This document shows, in pieces, positions 10,891-63,900 of a DNA stretch of 64,000 nucleotides; the stretch's first letter is position 1; each line of letters begins with the position of its first letter. Location of the stretch: assembly GCF_041956535.1 (NCBI RefSeq), contig NW_027192208.1:313608-377607 (forward strand). Direction: 5' to 3'. The notes beneath the pieces were generated by a model. It was not told where the DNA came from. It was given only the letters and a program-made list of their open reading frames with translations, and did not search any database. The stretch comes from Calcarisporiella thermophila CBS 279.70 (Eukaryota; Fungi; Calcarisporiellomycota). Position numbers and translations under genes: made by a program.

Positions 10891-11200
10891 NNNNNNNNNN
10901 NNNNNNNNNNNNNNNNNNNNNNNNNNNNNNNNNNNNNNNNNNNNNNNNNNNNNNNNNNNNNNNNNNNNNNNNNNNNNNNNNNNNNNNNNNNNNNNNNNNN
11001 NNNNNNNNNNNNNNNNNNNNNNNNNNNNNNNNNNNNNNNNNNNNNNNNNNNNNNNNNNNNNNNNNNNNNNNNNNNNNNNNNNNNNNNNNNNNNNNNNNNN
11101 NNNNNNNNNNNNNNNNNNNNNNNNNNNNNNNNNNNNNNNNNNNNNNNNNNNNNNNNNNNNNNNNNNNNNNNNNNNNNNNNNNNNNNNNNNNNNNNNNNNN
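10891..11200. other. Assembly gap (310 N)
   Basis: Run of N flanked by AT-rich sequence, between two convergent 3' ends. Confidence 1.
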
Positions 11201-36304: not shown

Positions 36305-37162
36305 TCATGTATGAGCGGCGGCCTCGTCTTTCTGGCCATTCAACCACCGCTCCTTCAAGCGATCCAATTCGCTCAAGTTGCTATCTATCCTCCGGACTAA
36401 GTCTTTTCTTCGCTTCCGCACCTCCTCTACTCCGTCCGCGTCTATCCCGTCCACCCTCAACATGAGTCTGGTCAGCAGCTCCTCGTACTCGAGGAACGGC
36501 CGGTTTTGCGGGTCGCGGGGCGTCGGCGAGCTGCCGAAGTTGGCTGGGTCGAACACCAAGCGCTGCGCGAGAACGCGCGGCCCATGGTGGGAACGAAGGT
36601 CTGCGAATTCGTCTGCAATTTTTGACAGCTCTTCGAGCTTTTGTACCGCAGCTGCATCGAGCGGTTGCCCTTGAGTTTCAGCCTCTGCAAGCGGCTGTTG
36701 CTGCGGCTGCGAACTCTCTTCAGAGGGGTGGAAAACAGGGTGTCTTTGGGTCTCCTGCGGAATCTCATCCTTTTGCTGGAAGGCCATGTTGAAGCTGGGA
36801 TTGAAGCGTGGCGAGTCTTGGGCGAACCTAACCGGACTTGATCTCCCGTGCGGGGATCCATGTCGATATACTGGCCCGTCTTGATATGGATGTCTGTACG
36901 AAGGCTGTGCTAACTCTAGAAAATAAGTCTGCCCGAGTCTAGGCGAGTACGCCGGCTTTAGGAAAGTTCTTCTTTTAGCTTGCTGCGAAGGACGTCTTTG
37001 GATATAGAGGTTGGGCTCGATATGAGCCGGTCCCGCATAGTAAGATTCATATAGTCTGGGCGAGGGGACAGAATAGCGATATGTTAGCGTGGGGGATAAT
37101 ATAGCAGGCTGCGGTAAGTGATAGTGATGGTGGGGTGTGTAGAGCTCGTATAGACAAGCCAT
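36305..37162 (-). CDS. BAG-domain Hsp70 co-chaperone
   Basis: FLEYEELLTRLMLRVDGIDADGVEEVRKRRKDLVRRI is the BAG helix 2-3 signature. Confidence 0.85.
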   Translation of the reverse strand: MACLYELYTPHHHYHLPQPAILSPTLTYRYSVPSPRLYESYYAGPAHIEPNLYIQRRPSQQAKRRTFLKPAYSPRLGQTYFLELAQPSYRHPYQDGPVYRHGSPHGRSSPVRFAQDSPRFNPSFNMAFQQKDEIPQETQRHPVFHPSEESSQPQQQPLAEAETQGQPLDAAAVQKLEELSKIADEFADLRSHHGPRVLAQRLVFDPANFGSSPTPRDPQNRPFLEYEELLTRLMLRVDGIDADGVEEVRKRRKDLVRRIDSNLSELDRLKERWLNGQKDEAAAHT

Positions 37163-46202: not shown

Positions 46203-46835
46203 ATGAGGTTCACGAATTTCTTCATTTTAGTTTTAACTTCGTTATTCGTTTCTTCGTTAGCTCAAGAGAATCAGGACACAATTCTTCAGCAAATCAATAC
46301 TATTCGAAAAAATCATGGTGTAGGGCCAATAATGCAATGGAGCCCGGAACTCGAAAAATCGGCCGAAAAAATAACTCGAAATTGCATTTACAAGCACGAA
46401 TTGCCGGATAACCTGGTCTCTATGTCCACTAATGATAAAGCATCGTGGAAAGATGCGATTATGTATTGGTATACTTCTGGTCTTGAGACCTACAATTTCA
46501 CCAGCCCAAAAGCAACTCCGATATCTTCATTTATGCTCGTGACGCTAGTCGCACCCCAATTTCAGAAAGTAGGGTGTGCTGTAAGTAACTGCGTTGGCAA
46601 AAATTTTCACTTCTGCCTATTCGAGTGGGTTGGGCCATTTCCTGCTAATGCAAGCGAGTTCTTAAAAGACTTGCAAACAAACGTGCACCCATTCAATCCT
46701 AATTCAACTCTCAGTCCTACTGCGCAAGGAAACTCGAATACTCCCGCTTCGAATATAGCAGTATCCAACACTATTCAATATGCTCCCATAGTTGTCGCTG
46801 CTATAATTACACTGGTTGTCACCCTTATTGTTTAG
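46203..46835 (+). CDS. Divergent CAP/PR-1 domain protein with signal peptide and C-terminal hydrophobic (GPI/TM) tail
   Basis: ILQQINTIRKNHGV..MQWSPELEKSA..AIMYWY..YNF..KVGCAVSNC; TATAAA near 46115; single exon. Confidence 0.8.
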   Translation: MRFTNFFILVLTSLFVSSLAQENQDTILQQINTIRKNHGVGPIMQWSPELEKSAEKITRNCIYKHELPDNLVSMSTNDKASWKDAIMYWYTSGLETYNFTSPKATPISSFMLVTLVAPQFQKVGCAVSNCVGKNFHFCLFEWVGPFPANASEFLKDLQTNVHPFNPNSTLSPTAQGNSNTPASNIAVSNTIQYAPIVVAAIITLVVTLIV

Positions 46836-57447: not shown

Positions 57448-59029
57448 ATGTCCGACACTCAAGATCTTCAACAGCAAAGTCCCCCGCCGCAGCAACATCA
57501 AGAGTCGATGATGCCCTCCCGCTCTGATAGTATGCGGCGTAAGCCAAACACACCACGGGGCTACAAGGGTGATCGAAAAGATAAGCAGAAACACAAGGTA
57601 TTGGAACTATGAATGCTATCATGTTTACATTTTATCTTCCTTTATTCAATCACAAACCATCTTGCCTAATCTCCTAACAAATTCATGCTCTTATATTTTG
57701 ATTTAGAACGAAAAGAAAGCGGCTGAAAATGCCAATTTAACCCAACAACCTTCTGACGCTGTTGCTTCCCCTCCCATGCAACAGCAACCTTTTTCTCAGC
57801 CATTATCTCCGCCTCAGATGCAAACGCTTGCACCACAGACACCACAGAAGCAACAGCAATCGCAGCAGTCGCAAAATTCAACCACTCCAGTTGCGCAATC
57901 TCCAGTTGCTACAATAATGACGGAGGTGGAAGGCCAGCAAGTCGAAGTCATCCCTACTGCGATAGTCATCAAGAATATTCCATTTTCTCTCAAGCGTGAT
58001 GCACTTTTGGCATATATGTCTCAGCTTGATATCCCAAAGCCATATGCATTCAACTATCATTTCGATAATGGTGTCTTTCGTGGGTTAGCTTTTGCGAATT
58101 TTAGAACCATGGACGAGACAGCACAGGTTGTACAGATACTCAATGGATGTGAAGTGGGTGGAAGGAAGTTAAGGGTTGAGTACAAAAAGGTTTTAGCCGT
58201 GGGGCAGAGCCAAATGGGACTAGGACAGGCTCAAGGGATGGCAACTCCAGAGAAGCCAGAGAAAAAGCCTCAAGTGAACGCTAATGGAAAGGATTTGGGT
58301 GTCCAGGTGGAAAATGCTGGGAGGAAGGAGGGCGGTGAGAGTAAAAAAGAGAAAAAAAATGGGAAAAAGGAGGAAAAGCCTTCAGAAGATAGGGCAAGCG
58401 GAAGATCACCTCAACCTCAAAGGCAACCTATGACGCAGCAACAACAACAGCAGCACCAGCAACAGCAAATGTACCAAATGCAACAACAGCTAGATGTTCT
58501 GAACTTGAATGATCCGATGACTCTGCAATTTTATGACCAATTACTTTTATTCCGTGGAGATGGCGGACGCGATGAACTTGTATACTCTGGGTTGAATTTG
58601 GCACAACAACGAGTGGTCCAAATGATTGCACAAAAACTACAGCTGTACTATTATACCACTGCCGCTGCGGACAGCGACAGGGAGACAGAACAACAGTTGC
58701 ACATAGCACGACAACCAGCACCTGCAGTCAAACCTCCTCAACTCAAGAGCCTCAATCATCGACCTTCCCGCGAACGTTTGGCAGCCACCAATAGTGGAGC
58801 TGACCATATTTTACGTAAAGAGCGAAGCATGCCTGATTTGGTGGGGTCATCCCGCTCTGCATTACGCAAGGCGATGGGAAATGGGGCCGGAGCTGGAGGA
58901 TTCGGTTTGGGAGGAGTTGGAACAATGGGTGCGGGAGTAAGCGGAGATTTCATAGTTGTGCAGCCTGTGAGGCAACCTAAAGGCCCAGAGCCTGGGAGAA
59001 ACTTCGCTGCACGAATGGCAGTGGCATAA
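57448..59029 (+). CDS. PIN4: RRM plus R3H-like RNA-binding protein, Pin4/Cip2 family
   Basis: IPTAIVIKNIPFSLK..PYAFNYHFDNGVFRGLAFANF..GRKLRVEYKK; LNLNDPMTLQFYDQLLLF; C-terminal RQPKGP. First exon begins at ATG 57448. Confidence 0.85.
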
Positions 59030-59708: not shown

Positions 59709-60062
59709 TTAAAGAGCGTTGGCAGAGAAACATTGAGCGGCACCAACGTTAGCGAGACCCTCCTGGTCGAAGGTGTCACAGCAAACGTGAGCCTGCTTGT
59801 TCTGGCACTTTTGGTTCACGGCAGCCGACACGCCGATGATGGCAGCAAGTGGAAGGTTGTCGATCAGACTGCATCCAGTGAAGACACCAACGGCAGCACC
59901 AAGTAAACCGTTGCCGTCAGCATCGTTCGAGTTCTGTTGGTTGCAGCAGGCAACCTTTTGGTTGGCATTGCAAGAGTTGGTAATGCCGCCCTTACCAGTT
60001 GGATGAGCCAGAACAGAGGCAATGAGGGTAACAAAAGCGACGAAGGAGAGTTTCATTTGCAT
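59709..60062 (-). CDS. Class I-type hydrophobin, copy A
   Basis: 117 aa, signal peptide, exactly 8 Cys in C-X7-CC-X23-C-X21-C-X7-CC-X15-C; hydrophobic loops; TATA (CTATATAAAG on minus) near 60180; intronless. Confidence 0.92.
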   Translation of the reverse strand: MQMKLSFVAFVTLIASVLAHPTGKGGITNSCNANQKVACCNQQNSNDADGNGLLGAAVGVFTGCSLIDNLPLAAIIGVSAAVNQKCQNKQAHVCCDTFDQEGLANVGAAQCFSANAL

Positions 60063-61186
60063 ATTGGAATTATTGATGAGTATTAGAGGTGAAATTAAGT
60101 TGATTATATGTGTAGATGAGTTGAAGAGTGAAGAGATGAAGAGTGAATTGATGAGCTGGAGAGGAATCCATTCGCCCTCTTTATATAGATTTCTCGCAGG
60201 AAAAAAGTAGTCCTTTAGTGGTCGTTAAATATAACTTAATTTAGAATTAATCAGGCCGTTTCTTTAGATCCATTATATTCGAATCTCCTTTCGAGCGATT
60301 AAGTGCATATCATCCGGTAAACCCTTATAGAGGAATAGGATGGCGGGCGAGGGGATAATGAAATCGATTGCCAAAATCAGTGCTTAGCAACGTTGGTGAC
60401 TTACTAATATAGTAACAAGTTATTTTTTAACTTGAATTTTCTCTGCAAATATACCAGGCCTCTCTTGCATCCGTTTATTTTCCTACATTATGCTGGGTAT
60501 ACCCGCTGCAGTCAAAGTTCAATTACAGATTACTTGTTTTTGCTTTTGAGGCTTTTTATGTAATCCTCCATTGTTGAACGACCGATTTCTTTTTTAGTTA
60601 GGAATGAGATCTGCCAGTAAATGCCGCCCTCCTACCACAATGAAAAACAATAGGACAACACTCAAAAAAGCTCGACCCGAAATATGCTCACTCTCAAGTC
60701 TGCCGCTGAACAGCCCTCCAACCTACTGAATCCTGCTTTTACGGGTGCGTAATTCTTCTGCACCTCATAATAAATTATATATCCATGCAGGAATTCTGAG
60801 AGAAAAATGAATGCGAGTAATCAATATAGCCAATATGTTTAAGTTTACTTTATTCACATTTAGAAATATTCTCCATGTCGATTTCACTTTATTTCATTAT
60901 AGTAAAGTTGTAAATTTTTGCCGAAAGGGCTAATTCCTCAGAGCTTCGCTCGAAATAACAAAAAAATTCAAAAAAAAAATCTGTTTCATGCTTTTTTCTC
61001 GGAGAATGAGTATTATGTTATTTTCTTGAAGCACAATTGAATTTAATAAAAAATCATATCATGTTTATGAAATAAATCAGTCGAAATAAAGGATCTTTAT
61101 ATAGTCACTTTGGGTTAAATCAATTAAATGTTAAATGATCACAGCAAAATATTGCCAATAAAAATTGAAATGCAGATGAATAATAA

Positions 61187-61528
61187 TTAGAGAACATTGA
61201 GTGCGCTACAACTGACGAGATCAACATTGATGATTCCGTTCTGAACCTTCTCGTCACAGCACACAGTGGCCTGCTTGTTCTGGCACTTCTGGTTTACTGC
61301 AAGAGCAGCACCAAGGATTCCAACGGGGATGTTGTCAATGAGACTGCATCCAGTGAACACACCAATGGGGATGCCTAGGAGGCCATTCCCTCCTTTGTTC
61401 GTGTTTTGCTGGTTGCAGCAGTAGACGTGTTGGTTGGCGTTACAGCTGTTGGAAACACCTCCCTTGGGGTGGGCAGCAGCGGCGGCAATGAGAGCAAAGA
61501 TAGCAGCGAAAGAGAGTTGCATGCGCAT
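61187..61528 (-). CDS. Class I-type hydrophobin, copy B (tandem paralog)
   Basis: 113 aa, signal peptide, C-X7-CC-X22-C-X20-C-X7-CC-X15-C; shares NSCNANQ, CCNQQN, GVFTGCSLIDN and AVNQKCQNKQA with copy A; intronless. Confidence 0.92.
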   Translation of the reverse strand: MRMQLSFAAIFALIAAAAAHPKGGVSNSCNANQHVYCCNQQNTNKGGNGLLGIPIGVFTGCSLIDNIPVGILGAALAVNQKCQNKQATVCCDEKVQNGIINVDLVSCSALNVL

Positions 61529-63827
61529 GTTGATAATATTTATGAAGTCAGGAAGTGAAAATGAAGTGAATTAAAATATGAGGAGGTGTGTTGTGGTTAG
61601 ATTCTCGAGACGACCACCAGCCTTTAAATACGCACTCTTTGGGTTAGAACAGCCAGTGACTTCTCGCAAATATTACTTTTTAAAGACTTAATTTCTTTCG
61701 CCTATTTTGATTGACGAGTGTTCGTTTGGATTTCCTACAACCAGATTACTTGCATTTGTTAAATTACTGTGTGCAGAACACATGCCTTGAAACTGTGGCG
61801 GAGACGGATCCGAATAAAATGTTGTCCCTAAAAAGGCTAATAATAACGAAGTTAGGTACCAAAATAGAACAAAGTTTTTAAAAACAGGACCTGACTCTGT
61901 TCTGAGATTTTGACCAGAACTTGTGTATGTCGGCACCAAATTATAGTTTCGAAAGTGTTCCTCTGATTTATCTCACAGATCGTAATTGTATAACAGCATA
62001 TCCGCTGAATTAATGCCAACAGACCGCCACGATGTACTTGATCCACTGTCATATAAATAGTAATGATACCACAGACAAGAAGTATATTGTATCTTGAAAA
62101 TATATATACTATCTGTCATCTGTACCATCGTCAATACCATAACCTATCATGACTACATTAAACAAAGTGAAATTAAAAAAATCCTTAAGTAAGAGGTTAA
62201 AGTAATTCTTACCTTATAGCGATGGCTCAAGCTACTTGATATTTTCTAAAAATAGATAATACAAACGGGCACGCCTACTAAAAAAAGCCACAGTAAAAGG
62301 CAGGTGGGAAATCCAGTTTGGCAGCAAGAATATGCAATGCGAATATATTGATCTCGGGGTTGGCGTTGATTTTGGACGAATTATTTGTTAGAGTTAATTG
62401 CCGATTCAATTAACTTTCAGCACATTTATTATCTTCACCAAACTTTATTAATAACTTCCATATGTATAAGGCATCCGTAGTTCTAGAGCCACACTGGATA
62501 ATTCTGCGATTTATCTCAGGTAGTTTCAAAAACCGGACCAATTCAATATCATATACTGCCACTATTTTTCCAGTCCATAATACCATTTTATAATACCGGT
62601 TAAGATTTGAGATTTCAAAATCCTGGCTCTGGTGGCACTCTTCGAATTTGAAACCCAAAATACCTTTCAGTAGAGCTCATATACTACAGAAACCAACGCA
62701 AACAAGGAGTATTTATGGGTGATCTTCATTTTGGTTTAATTTTCAAACAGCATGGCATCTCAGACGTCTGGTGGGCTCCAATACCTTTCGAACGTGCTGA
62801 GTGAAGGGATTTTTCATACTCTAAATTCTATTACCAAGTTGTCTAAAAACAATAAAGTGACCAATATTCTAATTGTTCATAAAAAGTTCCTCAGGTAGTA
62901 ATGTCTTTGGAATAATAATACTCTAAACCATAACTGTATTTTGTTTTTAGATATATAATTAAATTTTTTTATTAGATCAAATATTATTTATATTAACAAA
63001 TAACGGGAAAAGCATTTTGAATTTAAATCGTTAGACCATTCTGATTGTGGGAAAAGAGAAAGAAAAGTAAAAAAGTCCAATGAGACCAAGGTTAATATCA
63101 AACCATCATTGTCAAAATTCATAAGACATGCTGGGCATTAGTTATAGAATATTTTTAGATATGATTAAGTTCTTATACTGCAAAAGATAAAGAGAGAAGG
63201 ATTGAAAAATATTCATAAGAATTTAGGAAATCACTGATAAATTATTTTTGTTTTAATATTTTTAAAATCAAAATTTCAAGTTTACTGTTTGTTATTGCTA
63301 TATATTTAACAAAACATTCCCATGATAAACTCCAAACTCTGGTTGAATGCCTAGGCGAATATATCCAGCTTGAGTTGAAATTCTAATATTGAATGTAGGA
63401 AATAACTGAACAGTGAAAGGTTAGAGTCATTCGATATATTCATATAGAAGATTTGTAATAAAGCAAATTCTATTATGGATTTAGCTCCAAACCATCAAGT
63501 GCAAAAAACGTTTGTTCTAAATTAGCATCTAGATTTTAACAAATATAATAAAAGCTAGAGGTATTTTCAAGTATCTACCAGGTTTTATTAGCATACACTC
63601 ATAAACTAAATTATAATTCATTAACTGGCAAACATTAGCATTAGTTTTATTATACAAGTTGATTCACGAGCTTAAGGGGGATTCTGTTTGGCTCGTGTTA
63701 CAGTTGAATATTAAATCACAATAAAAATAAATTATATCATTTTCTTTCCTACTTTTTTGATGAAACACCGATAAATATAAAATTGGAAAAAAAGTATTTC
63801 TCAAAAGAAAAATTTGATTGCTAATTT

Positions 63828-63900
63828 CACCCACACCAGGGATCGAACCTGGAATCTTCTGCTTAGGAGGCAGACGCCGTATCCATTTGGCCATGTGGGC
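63828..63900 (-). tRNA. tRNA-Arg (anticodon CCT)
   Basis: Minus strand GCCCACATGGCCAAATGGATACGGCGTCTGCCTCCTAAGCAGAAGATTCCAGGTTCGATCCCTGGTGTGGGTG: acceptor stem GCCCACA/TGTGGGT, anticodon arm TCTGC-CTCCTAA-GCAGA, T-loop GGTTCGA, oligo-T downstream. Confidence 0.96.

Follow-up and report, generated by a model that had tools for sequence, protein, structure and literature searches.

Class I hydrophobin genes in Calcarisporiella thermophila, a fungus outside Dikarya, and their possible origin by ancient gene transfer

The window analyzed here, a 64,000-nt stretch of the genome of Calcarisporiella thermophila CBS 279.70, carries two small intronless genes on the minus strand whose products each display the full eight-cysteine pattern of a hydrophobin. 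Gene B (59709..60062) encodes a protein of 117 amino acids with cysteines at residues 31, 39, 40, 64, 86, 94, 95, and 111 (C-X7-CC-X23-C-X21-C-X7-CC-X15-C), and gene A (61187..61528) encodes one of 113 amino acids with cysteines at residues 29, 37, 38, 61, 82, 90, 91, and 107 (C-X7-CC-X22-C-X20-C-X7-CC-X15-C). Using the Pfam profile PF01185, whose curated cut-off is 23 bits, we obtained scores of 24.9 bits for B and 30.0 bits for A, in support of the class I hydrophobin assignment proposed in an earlier note on this DNA. With open reading frame coordinates, cysteine counts, and Pfam scores all in agreement, the observation of two intact hydrophobin genes is confirmed. Their unspliced translations are present exactly in NCBI/UniRef, on a contig of 688,217 nt, and the public annotation is thus intronless as well.

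As previously claimed, both proteins are predicted to be secreted. Their N termini are hydrophobic (mean hydropathy about 2.0 over residues 4 to 19), and hydropathy points to putative signal peptides spanning about residues 1 to 19 (60006..60062 in gene B and 61472..61528 in gene A, both minus strand); GRAVY values are 0.30 to 0.38. The most hydrophobic loop of the gene B product is the X21 segment between Cys4 and Cys5 (59805..59873, minus strand), the counterpart of the Cys4-Cys5 loop of Aspergillus RodA; the corresponding X20 segment of gene A (61283..61348, minus strand) is the one earlier likened to RodA. Upstream of gene B, a TATA box candidate, TATATAAA, is found 125 nt before the start codon (60180..60187, minus strand), and a TATA-like word, TATTTAAA, precedes the start of gene A by about 100 nt (61623..61630, minus strand), both recognized by their letters only. 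While such a word had correctly been noted in front of each gene, words of this kind are common in DNA of 31 to 34% GC, and these candidates, taken alone, carry no evidential weight.

Gene B is flanked by a host gene, a PIN4-like gene with an RRM domain (57448..59029, plus strand; ORF and Pfam PF00076), in which we read by eye one likely intron at about 57598-57706. The two genes are convergent, tail to tail, with 679 nt between the end of the PIN4-like gene at 59029 and the gene B stop codon. The sole run of Ns in the window lies at 10891-11200; the gapless spacing of about 680 bp reported before is therefore correct, and the linkage is genuine at the level of the assembly. Farther away, Pfam searches, in which spliced neighbor genes were queried exon by exon and unjoined, confirmed a KICSTOR C12orf66/KICS2-like gene (PF09404; 20533-22141, minus strand) and a DCAF12-like gene (PF23760; 11516-12160, minus strand), while the NUSAP1 candidate in the window gave no Pfam match. 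The KICS2-like and DCAF12-like genes fit C. thermophila as the host. A tRNA-Arg(CCT) gene at 63828-63900 (minus strand), 2.3 kb upstream of gene A, ends a long AT-rich and gene-poor stretch.

Two local features had been taken as signs of horizontal acquisition, namely that A and B form GC-richer islands and that they lack introns. The former was not borne out: with a GC content of 0.51 to 0.52 and a GC3s of 0.57 to 0.59, both genes are mid-range among the coding sequences of the window (GC, 0.41 to 0.63; GC3s, 0.32 to 0.77), so that the "island" is the ordinary contrast between coding and noncoding DNA. Neither foreign composition nor foreign codon usage was found in A or B, and we rejected GC content as evidence of transfer; host-like composition is also to be expected of an old transfer and is hence neutral on this question. 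As for the latter, both genes are indeed intronless, but so are others nearby, specifically a BAG gene (36305-37162, annotated as unspliced) and a CAP gene (46203-46835), and the absence of introns was likewise rejected as transfer evidence.

That the host belongs outside Dikarya, as the earlier note had suspected, agrees with NCBI taxonomy, which places C. thermophila in Calcarisporiellomycota. In the past, this septate fungus was counted among the ascomycetes, but today it is put beside Mucoromycotina (PMC6899921); its published genome came without mention of hydrophobins (PMC11393059). One might argue that A and B entered the assembly (28.2 Mb, 116 contigs) through a chimeric join or with DNA of a contaminating Dikarya species, and a 4.9-kb run of Ns does lie beyond the window (L012:1-4900). 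The PIN4 side is gapless, however, and A, B, and a third paralog are located on two large contigs (688 kb and 1.38 Mb) among host-type genes. Moreover, genes from a contaminant should have closely related sequences in the databases, whereas the nearest database protein is at most 42% identical. The host genome has one eIF3d gene and the expected three members of the RPB2 family, so that no second fungal genome is evident in the assembly. We consider contamination or misassembly highly improbable.

Altogether, we found four hydrophobin genes in the C. thermophila genome: A, B, a paralog on another contig (referred to as C3; 1,376,677 nt), and a gene of a different type on contig C25. The third gene (C3:1259171-1259476; L003:1501-1809, plus strand) adjoins an HSF-domain gene and encodes VTP21DRAFT_7405 letter for letter; apart from gene B, no other close homolog of A was found. 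Its Cys3-Cys4 loop is shortened to 14 residues, and its PF01185 score of 20.3 bits falls just under the cut-off, which accounts for its annotation as uncharacterized. A, B, and this paralog, hereafter the triplet, are 63 to 65% identical to one another, form a clade with support of 100/95, and have all retained the eight cysteines. Their dS of 1.0 to 1.5, compared with a dN of 0.28 to 0.35, indicates old duplications and proteins under purifying selection. DNA similarity between A and B (70% over 306 nt) is confined to the coding part, with the flanks unshared, and together with a dS of >1 this led us to reject a recent duplication of the triplet. The local duplication proposed before is real insofar as A and B are tandem paralogs, but it is incomplete as an account, with the third paralog, on another contig, being as close to A as B is. 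All three genes are host-like in GC and GC3s and prefer NNC codons (0.73 to 0.86, the highest values among the genes compared), a bias that would fit adaptation to high expression.

Two features of the loops are common to all three proteins. The Cys4-Cys5 loop is the most hydrophobic one (0.88 to 0.90), and the Cys5-Cys6 spacer is seven residues long instead of the five usual in class I. Since the Dikarya hits of this class also include spacers of six or seven residues, and spacing within class I has been described as highly variable, we regard X7 as a variant that does not exclude the triplet from the class.

The resemblance to RodA noted earlier turned out to be local. Compared through a HMMER alignment only, Aspergillus fumigatus RodA (PDB 6GCJ; class IA) and A and B have in common the eight-cysteine frame, a Cys1-Cys2 spacing of 7, and a hydrophobic Pro/Ile/Gly core in the Cys4-Cys5 loop (21 residues in RodA, 20 to 21 in A and B), including five identical residues before Cys5. 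In contrast, the Cys3-Cys4 loop comprises 39 residues in RodA as against 22 to 23 in A and B, the Cys5-Cys6 spacer 5 as against 7, and the N-terminal tail of RodA is longer. RodA in the PDB was not retrieved by the triplet profile at an E value of ≤10 and is not the closest protein overall; based on this and on the Cys3-Cys4 length, we rejected RodA orthology and class IA membership. The Cys4-Cys5 and Cys7-Cys8 loops of RodA are the two regions driving rodlet assembly, with the former being amyloid forming (PMC7389560), which makes the shared segment relevant to the mechanism of the triplet.

Secretion, four disulfides, and interface-triggered assembly are established for the hydrophobin family, and from their sequences A and B probably function as a rodlet-type coat. 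As the Cys4-Cys5 loop is the most hydrophobic one of the triplet and aligns with that of RodA, a RodA-like assembly mechanism suggests itself: A and B would be secreted onto aerial hyphae and spores, their Cys4-Cys5 and Cys7-Cys8 segments would stack into cross-beta rodlets, and the rodlets would make up a water-repellent layer that aids aerial growth and dry dispersal. Alternatively, A and B might keep the hydrophobin fold yet act as nonrodlet surfactants or adhesins, forming intermediate or class II-like films with the help of the X7 spacer. The unusual length of this spacer, Pfam scores close to the cut-off (or, for the third paralog, below it), and the top structural match would be in line with such a role. 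That is, when two AlphaFold2 models of low confidence (pLDDT 55) were compared with known structures, the best five VIA-align matches were all hydrophobins but weak (Z, 2.7 to 3.9), headed by class II HFBII in a tie with EAS and NC2; the best three Foldseek matches, MPG1, EAS, and RodA, were weak as well (E values of 0.13 to 0.69 with a low-confidence model). These weak matches agree with the hydrophobin family, while a model this poor cannot separate the classes. With loop lengths and Pfam both indicating class I, and X6 to X7 spacers present in ordinary Dikarya members of that class, we think a nonrodlet function unlikely. Mucor uses HsbA proteins for surface hydrophobicity (PMC13537970); no HsbA match (PF12296) was obtained in the whole host genome, where introns or divergence could hide one.

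For a view of the wider relationships, we searched 1.84 billion representative sequences with a triplet profile and obtained 11 hits outside the triplet, with Monosporascus (52.6 bits) and Schizophyllum SC4 (51.0 bits) scoring best, followed by Pseudogymnoascus, Boletus, Metarhizium SsgA, Thozetella, and others. Identity to outside proteins peaks at 41 to 42%, with a basidiomycete sequence, and the nearest Atlas clusters are all hydrophobins. As for the loop lengths, ascomycete hits have 7 to 8 residues between Cys1 and Cys2 and 15 to 20 between Cys4 and Cys5, whereas the Agaricomycete hits have 6 and 11 to 14, and the spacing of A and B (7/22-23/20-21/7/15) agrees with the former. Sordariomycete class I proteins (Metarhizium SsgA, Magnaporthe MPG1 [PDB 2N4O], Monosporascus, and Thozetella) are similar to the triplet in size and loop lengths, and an example is the Thozetella protein, whose 7/19/20/7/15 spacing nearly equals that of the triplet, X7 at Cys5-Cys6 included. 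These proteins are also the nearest ones in Cys-anchored trees, although they are only 32 to 41% identical to the triplet, their position depends on the alignment, and the triplet's host lies outside Dikarya. On the triplet, an ascomycete profile scores 36 to 45 bits versus 14 to 29 bits for a basidiomycete profile, a comparison biased because the triplet was part of the profile used to collect the ascomycete set. Despite SC4 being the second-best hit (42% identity), A and B differ from Agaricomycete class IB proteins of the SC3/SC4/SC16 type by their ascomycete-type loops and by a class IB profile score of 25 to 29 bits, as opposed to 65 to 124 bits for class IB members.

No named non-Dikarya relative of the triplet emerged from the 1.84 billion representatives, 5.8 billion clusters, or JGI metagenomes. 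That hydrophobins are a hallmark of Dikarya, as the earlier note had it, nevertheless needs qualification, because cases outside this group have been published. Ahrendt et al. 2018 (PMC6784888) described 14 hydrophobins of Caulochytrium that are class I-like and a class II-like protein of Mortierella elongata, to which Lovett et al. 2022 (bioRxiv 10.1101/2022.08.19.504535) added one ungrouped candidate each from Rhizophagus and Entomophthora. Canonical hydrophobins were absent from three Mucorales-grade proteomes (Mucorales and Umbelopsis) and one of Mortierellales (bioRxiv 10.1101/2022.08.19.504535), and Calcarisporiellomycota is unreported in these studies. The published cases are likewise from early-diverging fungi but from other phyla, and none appeared as a named match in our triplet searches; in Calcarisporiella, all four proteins are canonical, predicted to be secreted, and of two Dikarya-like types. 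We found no paper on Calcarisporiella hydrophobins in the literature searched, the coverage of which was incomplete. Hydrophobins outside Dikarya are thus not new, nor are the family and mechanism of A and B. These two genes add members to a known family from a host lineage that is new for it, and both the occurrence in this phylum and the two-type set appear to be unreported.

The trees bearing on the origin of the triplet have about 90 columns, are unrooted with long branches, and do not include RodA, MPG1, EAS, or the published non-Dikarya hydrophobins; ancient paralogy could mimic nesting in them. With a Cys-anchored alignment, the triplet nests with Sordariomycete and Dothideomycete proteins (support of 95/92, or 97/95 upon removal of three long branches), as a transfer from Pezizomycotina would predict. 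With the default alignment, its position is between Ascomycota and Basidiomycota (59/79, a weak support), as vertical descent would predict, and no constraint is rejected. Even with the Cys-anchored alignment, the AU test does not reject the vertical topology, in which Ascomycota form one clade without the triplet (P values of 0.25 and 0.34). Nesting within ascomycete class I, the check suggested for a Pezizomycotina donor, is therefore seen in one of two alignments; loop lengths and profile scores also favor such a donor, and the absence of named non-Dikarya relatives from our searches and of canonical hydrophobins from the Mucorales-grade and Mortierellales proteomes points the same way. Counting against it are the split of the best hits between Monosporascus and SC4 and the fact that the highest identity, 41 to 42%, is to a basidiomycete protein.

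Class I hydrophobins could instead predate the split of Dikarya and Mucoromyceta and have been lost in most zygomycete lineages but kept in Calcarisporiella, in which case the long Cys4-Cys5 loop would be an ancestral state, not an ascomycete mark. Besides the default tree and the AU tests, about equal identity to both Dikarya phyla, the scattered non-Dikarya cases including those of Caulochytrium, and the long residence implied by saturated dS and host-like composition are compatible with inheritance. A long Cys4-Cys5 loop is also present in PDB chain 6E9M (WI1 of Wallemia, a basidiomycete). Yet many losses would be required, other early-diverging fungi contributed no relative in our searches, the Cys-anchored trees place the triplet inside ascomycete sequences, and the fourth gene suggests that this lineage takes up hydrophobin genes. 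We see inheritance, along with the ancestral reading of the loop, as a possibility of somewhat less than even weight. An ancient transfer of the triplet ancestor from a Pezizomycotina fungus is plausible and testable, and we put it at about even odds from the sequences at hand.

The fourth hydrophobin gene makes a stronger case. Located at C25:89065-89367 (L004:1444-1746, plus strand) and intronless, it came up in the genome search, is missing from the protein collection, and is probably unannotated in the public protein set. Its product is a typical class IB protein, with a spacing of 6/32/11/5/12, a PF01185 score of 80.5 bits, and 101.5 bits on the class IB profile, and is 52 to 64% identical to Agaricales proteins, with the 64% being to Stygiomarasmius; the gene is AT-richer than the triplet (GC3s, 0.36). 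In every tree, it nests among Agaricales (96-97/88-91). Constraining it outside Basidiomycota gave p-AU values of 0.044 and 0.19, and constraining all four hydrophobins to one clade gave 0.035 and 0.055. Together with its place among Agaricales, the latter result makes two separate origins likely, and on sequence evidence the C25 gene is a stronger transfer candidate than the window pair and the best in the genome. In our main reading, to which we assign a probability of roughly 0.52, A, B, and the C3 paralog are functional class I hydrophobins whose ancestor would have come from a Pezizomycotina fungus, adopted host codon usage, and undergone two duplications, with the Agaricales-like C25 gene being a second, separate acquisition.

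A more far-reaching version, which we consider rather doubtful, holds that Calcarisporiella, a septate fungus of zygomycete grade, gained class I hydrophobins twice, from Pezizomycotina and from Agaricales, and covers its aerial structures with an amyloid rodlet coat of the Dikarya kind built from them. If both the double transfer and the coat were true, a mold-like habit would have been reached convergently via gene transfer between phyla. More generally, the genes bear on whether hydrophobins arose in Dikarya and leaked out by transfer or are an older trait of fungi that many lineages have lost. The non-Dikarya hydrophobins known before were isolated, odd candidates or derived from an uncultured chytrid, whereas the four canonical genes of Calcarisporiella belong to a culturable species (CBS 279.70) in a small, deep phylum, which allows rodlets, expression, and origin to be tested directly. 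As surface coatings, rodlet proteins that come from a thermophile and carry the uncommon X7 spacer could be of use as well.

The neighborhood of the C25 gene offers some additional observations. On one side, it is bordered by an acyl-CoA ligase and NmrA-like gene, and on the other, just downstream, by a gene encoding a fusion of a P450 with a flavodoxin/FAD reductase (L009:3300-7024, plus strand), in a layout like that of CYP102/CYP505. Some 4.5 kb upstream, at C25:84526-84895 (L008:5327-5696, plus strand), lies a gene whose secreted product of 100 amino acids contains an SH3 domain of bacterial type (PF08239, 49.6 bits); this gene has in common with the hydrophobin gene a 52-nt, 85% identical core promoter containing a TATA motif. 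Lastly, a 34-nt segment at L008:6113-6146 (plus strand) matches the start of the C25 hydrophobin gene at 82% (E value of 5e-4) in a frame that stays open for 13 codons before a stop, being either the relic of a copy or a chance match.
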